From the sequence record OR608733.1: 64,000 nt of DNA; one strand, written 5' to 3'. Under the pieces are notes generated by a model that searched no databases, was not told the DNA's origin, and worked only from the letters and a program-made list of their open reading frames with translations. A program made the position numbers and the translations under genes. Of the stretch, positions 6,962 to 53,237 are shown piece after piece; positions within the stretch are counted from its first letter, which is position 1, and each line of letters opens with the position of its first letter.

Positions 6962-7272
6962 AATGATTTCTCGATATCTGTTAATGAAATAATCATATCT
7001 TGGACATTGATGGTAATAACATTTTTATAAGTTAAATAAGTTGGATATGAACCCATAAATGTAATAGTCCCACAGATATGATTTTTATATCTAATATCAA
7101 CACATCCGTCATATCTCCAGATAAAATCAAATGATCCTTTAGTGTGGTGTTCAAGTGAAAGAATAGAACCACTAACTAATTTAGGATATTGTTCAAATTC
7201 AGACATTACATAATCTGCCAGTTCCTTAACCTCAGGATAATCAATCAATAATAGCATATACGTAAATCTCAA
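6940..7272 (-). CDS. Hypothetical protein (110 aa)
   Basis: Track ORF, overlaps neighbours. Confidence 0.65.
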   Translation of the reverse strand: MRFTYMLLLIDYPEVKELADYVMSEFEQYPKLVSGSILSLEHHTKGSFDFIWRYDGCVDIRYKNHICGTITFMGSYPTYLTYKNVITINVQDMIISLTDIEKSLCQQLLS

Positions 7273-7742
7273 TTAGTTAATATAACACCCCATCCAGGGT
7301 GGACTCTTTCGAAAAATGGTAATGTATTATTTCGTATACTGTCTGCATCAATATTTGGAATGTGGATGGTACAACAGTGGGGGTTACTGTCAATCTTGAA
7401 ATAGAAATTATCTTTTAAATCTTCAACCTTGGATGTTTGTAATGGATATAAAATACCATTCCCCCAAACATACCAACGTCTATACAGCTTATCGTTTAAC
7501 CGCTTCTCAATAACCGAATGCGATTTGAAACGAGGAACTCGCAAACGCATCCCGTTTACTTCAGCCCATTTGTCTACCCGATCATAGCTAATAATTCCAT
7601 CCTTAACCATTACAAAGATAAATCCCTCAACTATGTTGGGGAGACGAACTACGTGTTTCAGAACCATAGTAAACGGAGATAACGTCAGATCAAGTTCAGC
7701 TGCCATTTGCTCGTCGAGCTTTTTAGCAGTGTTCTTTGCCAT
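7269..7742 (-). CDS. Hypothetical protein (157 aa)
   Basis: AGGAG SD, operon context. Confidence 0.8.
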   Translation of the reverse strand: MAKNTAKKLDEQMAAELDLTLSPFTMVLKHVVRLPNIVEGFIFVMVKDGIISYDRVDKWAEVNGMRLRVPRFKSHSVIEKRLNDKLYRRWYVWGNGILYPLQTSKVEDLKDNFYFKIDSNPHCCTIHIPNIDADSIRNNTLPFFERVHPGWGVILTN

Positions 7743-50178: not shown

Positions 50179-50255
50179 GCGCTCATAGTTCAGTTGGTTA
50201 GAATACCCGCCTGTCACGCGGGTGGTCAGGGGTTCGAGTCCCCTTGGGCGCGCCA
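50179..50255 (+). tRNA. tRNA-Asp(GUC)
   Basis: 77 nt, loop CTGTCAC, G73, CCA. Confidence 0.95.
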
Positions 50256-50261
50256 TTTAAT

Positions 50262-50337
<76 letters not shown>

Positions 50338-50421
50338 TATTCTAAAGAGTAGCTTCGGCTACTCTTTTATGTTGCCATGGGTTATCTTATGAATTAAAAT
50401 GATTTACTTGAGAGCACACTC

Positions 50422-51429: not shown

Positions 51430-51713
51430 AATAATAATATTTATAACTATTTAGATAATTATACTGGCACGATGATATTATGTAAGAGTACTATAATAAA
51501 GTATTCTTAAATCTATCCACTAAACACACTCGGTGGTAGAACTTATTATAGAGTGTGTCTAAATGCCAGGGGTTTGCCACCCCTGGTTATATTCATTGTT
51601 ACTATTATAAATTCATTTATAGATGAGAAAAGGTTTTATCACCTTTTCAAAATCGGCATTTAATTCCAGTTAAAAAACTGAATCTATGCTACATTGTAAT
51701 AAAGGAGTCTATT

Positions 51714-52387: not shown

Positions 52388-52424
52388 TCCGTGATAGCTC
52401 AGTCGGTAGAGCAAATGGCTGTTA
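52388..52424 (+). pseudogene. tRNA-Asn 5' fragment (nt 1-37)
   Basis: 35/37 identical to 50262-50298; differences lie in the anticodon stem. Confidence 0.85.
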
Positions 52425-52433
52425 CGATTTCAT

Positions 52434-52520
52434 TGGTAAGTACCCGAGTGGCAGCAGGGAGCGGACTGTTAATCCGTTGGCGAAAGCCCACCGTAGGTTC
52501 GAATCCTACCTTACCAGCCA
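52434..52520 (+). tRNA. Class II tRNA with GUU anticodon on a tRNA-Tyr-like scaffold
   Basis: 87 nt; acceptor TGGTAAG/CTTACCA, G73, CCA; loop CTGTTAA; variable arm GGC-GAAA-GCC; T arm GTAGG-TTCGAAT-CCTAC. Confidence 0.88.
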
Positions 52521-52526
52521 ATTTCT

Positions 52527-52550
52527 AAAAGTAGCCAGCTGGCTACTTTT
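52527..52550 (+). terminator. Perfect palindromic terminator after the class II tRNA
   Basis: AAAAGTAGCCAGCTGGCTACTTTT. Confidence 0.75.
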
Positions 52551-52603
52551 ATCTTGTTCTATAGATCGAACTAGCTATCTATTTTTTAAACCCTAGGTTC
52601 GAT

Positions 52604-53162
52604 ATGAAAGAAAAAAATAATTAATGGTTATCGGGCTCTGTATTTACCTGAACATCGGCAGGCAAAAGCTAACCCCAAAATGTTTGGATGGGTATACGAA
52701 CACCGTGTAGTCGGTGAAGATACAATCGGAAGATCTCTTTACGATGACGAAGAGGTTCATCATTTGGATGAGAACAAACTCAATAACCATCCCGATAATC
52801 TTTTGATCCTCCCTCAATCACAGCATCTAAAACTACATGCATGGATGAAACGACTGGGCATTGATCCAAAGAACTATCCTACAAAACTTTGTGGTGCTTG
52901 TGGTAGGGTAATGAATCATAAATTGATTAAATTCTGTAACCCTGAGTGTTCTGCCAAAGGTCGACGTAAGGTTGATCGACCATCTAAAGAACAACTCGTC
53001 CTTGACGTTACATTGTTATCTCTTGTGAAAATAGGAGAAAAGTATGGGGTATCGGATAATGCAATTCGTAAATGGTGTCGGTCATACAAAATCAATATTC
53101 CAGCTAGGTTTATTAGGGTCAGCACTAATGGGGGTATTAGCACCTTGGCCCCCACACAATAA
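52604..53162 (+). CDS. HNH homing endonuclease with Zn-ribbon and HTH; frameshifted at A7 near the 5' end
   Basis: YEHRVV...EEVHHLDENKLNNHPDNL...H; CGAC...FCNPEC; KYGVSDNAIRKW. Track frame starts at 52680 but is open back to 52608. Confidence 0.85.
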
Positions 53163-53196
53163 AAATATACTCGATGTAGATTAATATACAAAAACA

Positions 53197-53237
53197 TAAT
53201 CACTGGGTCCCTGGTTCGAGTCCAGGTCACGGAGCCA
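53197..53237 (+). pseudogene. tRNA-Asn 3' fragment (nt 36-76)
   Basis: 41/41 identical to 50297-50337, including CCA. Confidence 0.9.

Follow-up and report, generated by a model that had tools for sequence, protein, structure and literature searches.

The 64,000-nucleotide stretch of sequence record OR608733.1 analysed here (the window, read 5' to 3' on one strand) carries a tRNA gene with the asparagine anticodon GUU and a long variable arm, and this gene and an HNH_3 open reading frame together make up one insert, which splits a second class I tRNA-Asn gene in its anticodon loop. On balance the sequence comparisons favour, by a modest degree of confidence, the view that the long-arm tRNA works as a decoder of Asn codons and travels in partnership with a homing-type nuclease. 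Among textbook bacterial tRNAs, a long variable arm is found only in the Leu, Ser, Tyr and Sec species. The features on which the argument is built are as follows.

50179..50255, plus strand: tRNA-Asp(GUC), first pair G1-C72, D loop of 9 nt including one extra base (ARAGORN, Rfam)
50262..50337, plus strand: intact class I tRNA-Asn(GUU) of 76 nt, at 'site 1' (ARAGORN, Rfam)
52388..53237, plus strand: second class I tRNA-Asn(GUU), broken (pieces compared separately with the intact genes, L053, L054 and L055)
52425..53196, plus strand: inserted cassette of about 772-774 bp, or ~0.77 kb (flank matches to empty-site relatives)
52434..52520, plus strand: tRNA with a long variable arm (class II type), anticodon GUU (ARAGORN, Rfam, minimum free energy fold, positional parse)
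52526..52551, plus strand: terminator-like hairpin, 6 nt past the CCA of the long-arm tRNA (consensus scan, sequence comparison)
52680..53162, plus strand: HNH_3 endonuclease ORF of 160 aa, homologue of PHIKZ296 (Pfam, frame comparison)

Positions 52434-52520 hold a real tRNA gene, far above chance and 95% conserved where its flanks are 74-83% conserved. ARAGORN calls an 87-nt tRNA-Asn(gtt) on the plus strand with the anticodon at 52468-52470, and Rfam RF00005 matches over its full model length with 53.7 bits (gathering score 29; E = 1.5e-9), assigning ~12 extra nt to the variable region. The minimum free energy structure computed with RNAfold is a five-arm cloverleaf of -28.6 kcal/mol (z = -2.3 against shuffled sequences), with an acceptor stem of 7 bp, a D stem of 3 bp, an anticodon stem, a T stem of 5 bp, and a variable region of 15 nt that folds into a 3-bp stem closed by a GAAA loop (GGC-GAAA-GCC). 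The acceptor pairs 5' UGGUAAG with 3' CUUACCA, and U1-A72, G73 and an encoded CCA can be read directly off the sequence. The original prediction, whose quoted 35-nt segment lies at 52443-52477, had described a class II tRNA with GUU, G73 and U1-A72 at this place, and gene caller, covariance model, fold and sequence all bear it out.

The window belongs to a phiKZ-type Pseudomonas phage: over the 2 kb surrounding the gene it matches phages 124.01, 2PS and 14Ps5-6 at 100% identity and phiKZ at 99.5%, whose tRNA cluster runs Leu(UAA), Pro(UGG), Met(CAU), Asp(GUC), Asn(GUU), a second 'Asn(GUU)' and Thr(UGU), and in whose GenBank record (NC_004629) the long-arm gene is labelled tRNA-Asn, PHIKZ_t02. 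The class I tRNA-Asn at 50262-50337 has U1-A72, G73 and a D loop of 8 nt, and its sequence is identical to that of the intact site-2 tRNA-Asn of relatives. The hairpin at 52526-52551 is similar to the hairpin that follows this class I gene after its end at 50337. Elsewhere in the region, ~51430-51713 is an intergenic stretch with homologues of PHIKZ298 and PHIKZ297 on either side; in phiKZ, an abundant RNA of ~100 nt from the PHIKZ298-PHIKZ297 intergenic stretch has been reported by Grad-seq (PMC8545117).

The identity elements of the relevant bacterial tRNAs are well described. Asn identity resides in the anticodon (G34, U35, U36) and G73 and can be transplanted, GatCAB requires U1-A72, and TyrRS identity consists of A73, G1-C72 and GUA, with G73 serving as an antideterminant for TyrRS and LeuRS (PMC9976931). 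With GUU, G73 and U1-A72 in place, the long-arm tRNA possesses the Asn set, including the GatCAB determinant, and lacks the Tyr set. Its likeness to bacterial class I tRNA-Asn lies in the anticodon loop CUGUUAA, G73 and U1-A72, and its anticodon stem-loop does not differ from the one in E. coli tRNA-Asn (L051), but it has a variable region of 15 nt that forms a hairpin, as against 5 nt, its D stem has 3 bp and its D loop is enlarged, and its acceptor and T stems differ. The small D loop and short variable loop that make up the docking surface of the GatB tail are thus features of the class I molecule and not of the long-arm one.

The resemblance to tRNA-Tyr, which had been proposed as the scaffold, was judged by nearest neighbour with the anticodon masked and by D-arm distance, with E. 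coli and phage tRNAs as comparators. Among the tRNAs collected, the nearest non-Asn relative under masking is E. coli tRNA-Tyr (60/75), and the closest non-Asn neighbours of the D arm among 1144 tRNAs are again tRNA-Tyr, at edit distances of 4-5, the nearest at 4, as the proposal of a Tyr-like D arm had anticipated. Bacterial tRNA-Tyr (E. coli L052 and phage) is like the long-arm tRNA in how long its variable arm is (median 14 nt) and in a D arm of the CCCGAG-GG-AGGG type. However, the two differ at every TyrRS identity position, with GUU, G73 and U1-A72 in the one and GUA, A73 and G1-C72 in the other. That the molecule is still a Tyr tRNA reading Asn codons, or that its GUU arose lately as a private mutation or through faulty sequencing, is a reading to which the D arm lends some colour and which is nevertheless close to refuted: G73, U1-A72 and U36 all oppose bacterial TyrRS identity, A73 is present in 31/31 phage tRNA-Tyr of the same data set, and GUU is found in every relative, in more than 20 independent records and in the diverged PA1C lineage. 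Since BLAST searches blind to the anticodon returned no relative with GUA, the GUU is neither a private mutation nor a sequencing error, and the reservation that the original prediction had attached to it falls away.

The long arm raises a different question, that of serine. SerRS ignores the anticodon and uses the long arm and G73, and bacterial tRNA-Ser keeps G1-C72 and G2-C71 (PMC9976931). Charging by SerRS, which would place Ser at Asn codons, would draw on the long arm, on G73, and on G2-C71 and C11-G24 in the phiKZ member, yet we consider it very improbable. The first pair is U1-A72 where tRNA-Ser keeps G1-C72; the 2-71 pair varies freely across the family of long-arm tRNAs described below (18 GC, 15 CG, 8 other); and the arm is short for a tRNA-Ser, with 15 nt and a 3-bp stem in the present gene and a family median of 15 nt as against 18 nt in phage tRNA-Ser.

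The long-arm GUU tRNA belongs to a broad phage family and is not a private recruitment by phiKZ. Sensitive BLAST searches with the 87 nt retrieved relatives from T5-like, T4-like (Serratia CBH8) and Phapecoctavirus phages, in the form of 80-86-nt 'tRNA-Asn' genes with the same anticodon arm, T arm and G73 and a variable hairpin of the CGAAAG type. A pattern scan of IMG/VR, in which a core pattern was combined with a gap exceeding that of class I tRNAs in length, matched 46 contigs, and the collection comprises 41 or more different tRNA(GUU) genes with a long arm, from unrelated phages. The anticodon stem and T loop were set by the search pattern, so their conservation is uninformative. The Asn marks are conserved throughout the family: G73 is present in 40/41, and 31 genes have U-A and 9 have G-C as the 1-72 pair. 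Pairing at acceptor positions 2-7 is kept in 39-41 of the 41 through compensatory changes, with 4-6 pair types at each, and the variable region spans 9-21 nt (median 15), often with a GNRA or UUCG loop; these pair statistics come from a positional parse, as some 5' ends were out of register in the MAFFT alignment. Many phage tRNA sets that are close to complete have the long-arm gene as their sole tRNA-Asn, beside a separate tRNA-Tyr(GUA) (among them L009, L013, L014, L017, L027, L031, L033, L041 and L046), while in L006, L016 and L028 it is found immediately downstream of a class I tRNA-Asn. In phages beyond the phiKZ group it is an ordinary array member, and no split class I halves were found around it there.

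The family also bears on the proposed recruitment of a Tyr tRNA to Asn. The Tyr-like D arm stands, but it is confined to a phiKZ sub-group (the phiKZ types, L042, L040, L043, L032 and L006), the D arms of the remaining branches being quite different and not Tyr-like, and the long-arm tRNA-Asn is specific neither to phiKZ nor to Pseudomonas phages. Furthermore, tRNAs with anticodons for Lys, Trp, Cys and Thr share the same architecture. A tRNA-Lys(CUU) on a similar long-arm scaffold is encoded by Caulobacter phage CcrColossus and Roseobacter phage DSS3P8 (L061 300-389 and L062 290-377; 77-81% identical to the phiKZ long-arm tRNA), and other phage arrays contain five-arm tRNAs for Trp, Cys, Thr and Ile. 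The discriminators of these long-arm forms (U73 in 4/4 Cys, G73 in 6/8 Trp and A73 in 6/6 Ile) track the isotype of the anticodon. The Tyr resemblance is real, and the overall pattern is a general phage habit of placing a long arm on short-armed isoacceptors that keep their own identity marks.

In cellular genomes the family is rare. A scan of one genome each from 185,579 bacterial and archaeal species with the core pattern gave 27 hits, about 6 of which are true long-arm genes, two of them in phage-like tRNA arrays (L071 and L089) and four single on their contigs. A chromosomal origin was considered and rejected, most of the 27 hits being class I tRNA-Asn loci with repeated units that resemble a 3' half, in Verrucomicrobiota. 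The long-arm phage tRNA-Asn family is apparently undescribed so far: the full-text literature yielded no mention of phage tRNA-Asn having a long variable arm, or of class II-type phage tRNAs of other isotypes, and papers on phage tRNAs and tRNA-targeting defences do not mention the long arm of tRNA-Asn.

The long-arm tRNA and the HNH_3 ORF form one insert in the anticodon loop of the second class I tRNA-Asn. The flanks match empty-site relatives at 99-100% up to 52424 and resume at 53197, with junctions that are ambiguous by 2 nt, and between them lie a 9-nt linker, the long-arm tRNA, the terminator-like hairpin and the HNH_3 ORF. Relative to the intact genes, the broken tRNA-Asn at 52388-53237 has the cassette in its anticodon loop as its one insertion and two substitutions in the 5' piece, and its 3' piece matches the intact copy at 50262-50337 without a difference. 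Phages Koomba 2, KEN19 and fMGyn-Pae01, which are without the HNH gene, have at site 2 an intact 76-nt class I tRNA-Asn identical to 50262-50337. Occupied and empty alleles of one site are therefore found among close relatives with one shared junction. The suspicion, voiced in the original prediction, of a connection between the tRNA and the HNH gene is thereby upheld as physical linkage, the tRNA riding on an HNH-bearing insert that is present or absent among Phikzvirus genomes.

An intron reading of the insert was tried and rejected. Rfam returned no intron family at E <= 1 between 47000 and 57000, the nucleotides of group I splice sites (a U preceding the 5' site and a G ending the intron) are missing at the junctions, a final G is absent from all three ways of reading the junctions, and in PA1C the relic halves are without the anticodon and part of its stem.

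The HNH ORF retains its HNH_3 domain (Pfam PF13392, E = 1.1e-9) within 160 aa and is 87-88% identical in amino-acid sequence to the homologues of PA1C and phiHQ. It is, however, 25 codons shorter at the 5' end than the 185-aa homologue of PA1C/phiHQ (L056 2998-3555), with one frameshift-type break; this break makes present-day nuclease activity doubtful, and the phiKZ lineage may be losing the nuclease. The HNH protein has relatives at 129 places in IMG/VR, and 77 of the 80 loci kept have tRNA genes no more than 2 kb away, nearly all of which share the strand. Long-arm versions of class I isoacceptors are enriched close to the HNH ORFs, with 10/64 within 150 nt as against 14/288 further off (Fisher p = 0.005), a figure that counts contigs irrespective of relatedness and is to be taken as a lead only. 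Several unrelated long-arm tRNA-Asn genes likewise adjoin ORFs of nuclease type, of HTH+HNH, zinc-finger+HNH or zinc-finger+DUF559 composition.

The nearest known counterparts of this arrangement are free-standing homing endonucleases: T4 SegB, which has its preferred site inside the tRNA-Asn gene of T2L (PMC2330249), and the T5 HNH enzymes hegA/C/D (AY543070), whose genes also lie among tRNA genes; the PHIKZ296 homologue is 30% identical to the hegD region of T5. Common to SegB, the heg enzymes and the present HNH protein are a target in a tRNA gene, putative in the present case, and presence or absence between related phages. Unlike SegB and the heg enzymes, the putative HNH nuclease accompanies a tRNA of the same anticodon and another architecture, and both lie inside the target tRNA gene. 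What is new is thus a cassette that would bring a same-anticodon substitute for the tRNA gene that it interrupts, and a tRNA gene moving with a homing-type nuclease into a paralogous tRNA gene would make a possible self-compensating selfish element.

A census of 51 records of related phages found the cassette at site 2 in 10, a PA1C-type arrangement in 4, a site-1 type in 8, an empty site 2 in 22 and other states in 7. The PA1C lineage (PA1C, phiHQ, BRkr and phiLBG22) has the same arrangement as the window, with relic pieces that have decayed further and an HNH gene of full length (185 aa), and its members contain the long-arm copy with no second match to a phage tRNA-Asn. In T2P, U1B, U5, phi9_PA9, OMKO1, fMGyn, Churi and HUST_1, the long-arm tRNA is found at site 1, after tRNA-Asp, with the same left junction as the cassette and without the HNH gene. 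As a separate observation, like terminator hairpins follow both types of tRNA-Asn (50338-50375 and 52521-52551), and this likeness coincides with the right-hand junction of the site-1 replacement in the T2P/fMGyn group.

Between phiKZ and PA1C the long-arm tRNA is 95.2% identical, as against 79% for the spacer, 83% for the HNH gene and 74% for the upstream flank, and its 4 differences fall 4/4 at unpaired positions, a pattern of sequence conservation indicating that it is under purifying selection. Because cassette and flanks have diverged to a similar extent, an old insertion followed by later loss or exchange, for which recombination between tRNA-Asn paralogues would offer a route, fits at least as well as recent homing.

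The distribution admits a reading in which the tRNA has little role in translation and serves mainly either as a filler allele that is immune to the nuclease and maintained through the spreading of the cassette itself, or as a decoy or competitor against a host defence that targets tRNA. The gene is missing in 29/51 related records and is therefore dispensable, tRNA and HNH gene are physically linked in one insert, and long-arm tRNAs are enriched near HNH ORFs in the proportions given above; moreover, in E. coli the PARIS nuclease AriB is known to attack tRNA-Asn(GUU) as a secondary target, and the same work raises the idea that phage tRNAs act as decoys (10.1101/2025.02.04.636281). We nonetheless hold a mainly non-decoding role to be quite unlikely, since identity elements would not persist in a filler, whereas the tRNA geometry, G73, anticodon loop and encoded CCA are kept across very distant phages and the long-arm gene is the sole tRNA-Asn in many arrays.

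In the explanation favoured here, that of a functional Asn decoder, the cassette occupies the anticodon loop of a resident class I tRNA-Asn gene, and the long-arm tRNA would thus stand in for the lost copy, as a working replacement for what the insertion destroyed. It would be transcribed with its own terminator and matured like the other phage tRNAs, and its divergent sequence would escape a nuclease aimed at the ordinary tRNA-Asn gene. P. aeruginosa has an ND-AspRS together with GatCAB as Asp-amidotransferase (PMC2330236); the long-arm tRNA would be aspartylated by the host ND-AspRS by virtue of GUU and G73, amidated by GatCAB by virtue of U1-A72, and would then read both AAU and AAC. The phage is AT-rich, and in the window's phage ORFs Asn codons number 63 per 1000, 70% of them AAU, which amounts to a high demand. 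As a pool, the tRNAs of phiKZ are expressed, depend on the nvRNAP, and co-sediment with ribosomal fractions (PMC8545117, PMC12571901); the phiKZ papers and their supplements make pooled statements about tRNAs, and no per-gene expression or charging of the long-arm tRNA was found in them. One awkward point for this explanation is that an intact, identical class I tRNA-Asn is present at site 1, if that is the sequence that the HNH protein cuts.

The weakest link of the explanation is the amidation step. The GatB tail docks on the D loop, beside the variable loop, and clashes with a single extra D-loop base (PMC2811023). The tRNA-Asp at 50179-50255 provides an internal comparator for GatCAB antideterminants, under the rule established in PMC9976931 and PMC2811023: between G19 and position 22 there are 2 nt in the phage's class I tRNA-Asn, 3 in its tRNA-Asp, which is of the rejected type, and 4 in the long-arm tRNA. 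With two extra D-loop bases and a variable region of 15 nt, amidation may be poor. The argument from GatCAB made in the original prediction accordingly holds for the first pair, where U1-A72 fits, but not for the enlarged D loop, as bacterial GatCAB reads this loop and refuses an extra base there.

It may then be asked whether the tRNA is aspartylated by the host ND-AspRS, for which GUU and G73 are suited, and, being a poor substrate of GatCAB, stays Asp-tRNA(GUU), to be largely kept out of translation or to cause a low level of Asn-to-Asp substitution. The geometry of the D loop and the seat of GatCAB beside the variable loop speak for such an outcome, and the evolutionary record speaks against it, so that we regard it as unlikely. 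U1-A72 is kept in the members from Pseudomonas phages, while members from enteric phages have drifted to G1-C72, which suggests selection for amidation, and in 9 Pseudomonas phage records of the census the long-arm gene is the only phage tRNA-Asn match, at 95% conservation. The long-arm tRNA-Asn poses a testable question of tRNA identity, in that class IIb and other synthetases, and the GatCAB transamidosome in Pseudomonas, may tolerate an arm at the docking surface.

Two other systems invite comparison. The nev-tRNAs of nematodes (class II, with Gly or Ile anticodons; PMC3333845) also combine a long arm with an anticodon of a class I family, but they have leucine identity and are charged with Leu, whereas the discriminator and first pair of the long-arm tRNA-Asn match the isotype of its own anticodon. 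The tRNA-Lys, tRNA-Thr and tRNA-Asn of T5, studied in relation to PARIS (PMC11464382, 10.1101/2025.02.04.636281), are phage isoacceptors of tRNAs cut by a defence, as is the present gene, but the T5 tRNAs evade through point changes in the anticodon stem-loop, and the stem-loop of the long-arm tRNA matches that of E. coli tRNA-Asn. The T5 tRNA-Asn helps to rescue the toxicity of PARIS/AriB (10.1101/2025.02.04.636281). This rescue was considered as functional evidence for the long-arm tRNA and dropped, because the T5 tRNA-Asn is a class I molecule of 78 nt (AY543070) and the result is not transferable. In T5 this gene (L059 6953-7030) is overlapped by ORF T5.069 (7007-7525), and the corresponding place in most T5-like phages is taken by an 83-nt long-arm tRNA-Asn, so the tRNA-Asn locus varies among relatives of T5 too. 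The existence of the long-arm form has a bearing on how annotators read phage tRNA sets and on studies of phage defences that target tRNA-Asn.

A more general scheme can be entertained tentatively, although we think it rather less than probable: long-arm versions of short-armed tRNAs (Asn, Trp, Cys, Thr, Ile and Lys) might be nuclease-immune replacements that travel with homing-type endonucleases, whose target would be the ordinary tRNA gene. If this were so, the cassette would act selfishly, disrupting a tRNA gene and supplying its own functional substitute, and the scheme would account for class II-type Asn tRNAs being found mostly in phages and rarely in cells.

Several minor observations concern the neighbourhoods of long-arm tRNAs and related loci. 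Small ORFs (HTH+HNH, zinc-finger+HNH, zinc-finger+DUF559 and HTH_38) lie 50-85 nt from long-arm tRNA-Asn genes on unrelated phage contigs (L035 110-649, L041 1717-2265, L028 1506-2183, L014 3585-4118, L019 453-992 and L031 12493-13068), the distance in L028 being counted from a class I tRNA-Asn that directly precedes a long-arm tRNA-Asn. In Verrucomicrobiota and other metagenome-assembled genomes, tandem units are found downstream of class I tRNA-Asn (L064 3874-3910 and 4198-4234; L069 5130-5166 and 5458-5494; L070, with three units; L080; L085), each consisting of the anticodon loop, a GC hairpin, the T arm and the 3' acceptor strand of that tRNA-Asn, and these may be relics of att sites or tRNA-derived repeats. 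Finally, in unrelated IMG/VR phages, five-arm tRNA-Trp, tRNA-Cys and tRNA-Thr genes whose discriminators fit their isotypes are located within 30 nt of an HNH-family ORF (L104 2286-2370, L126 2261-2345, L132 2268-2356, L130 2286-2370, L166 2422-2505 and L131 1581-1662).
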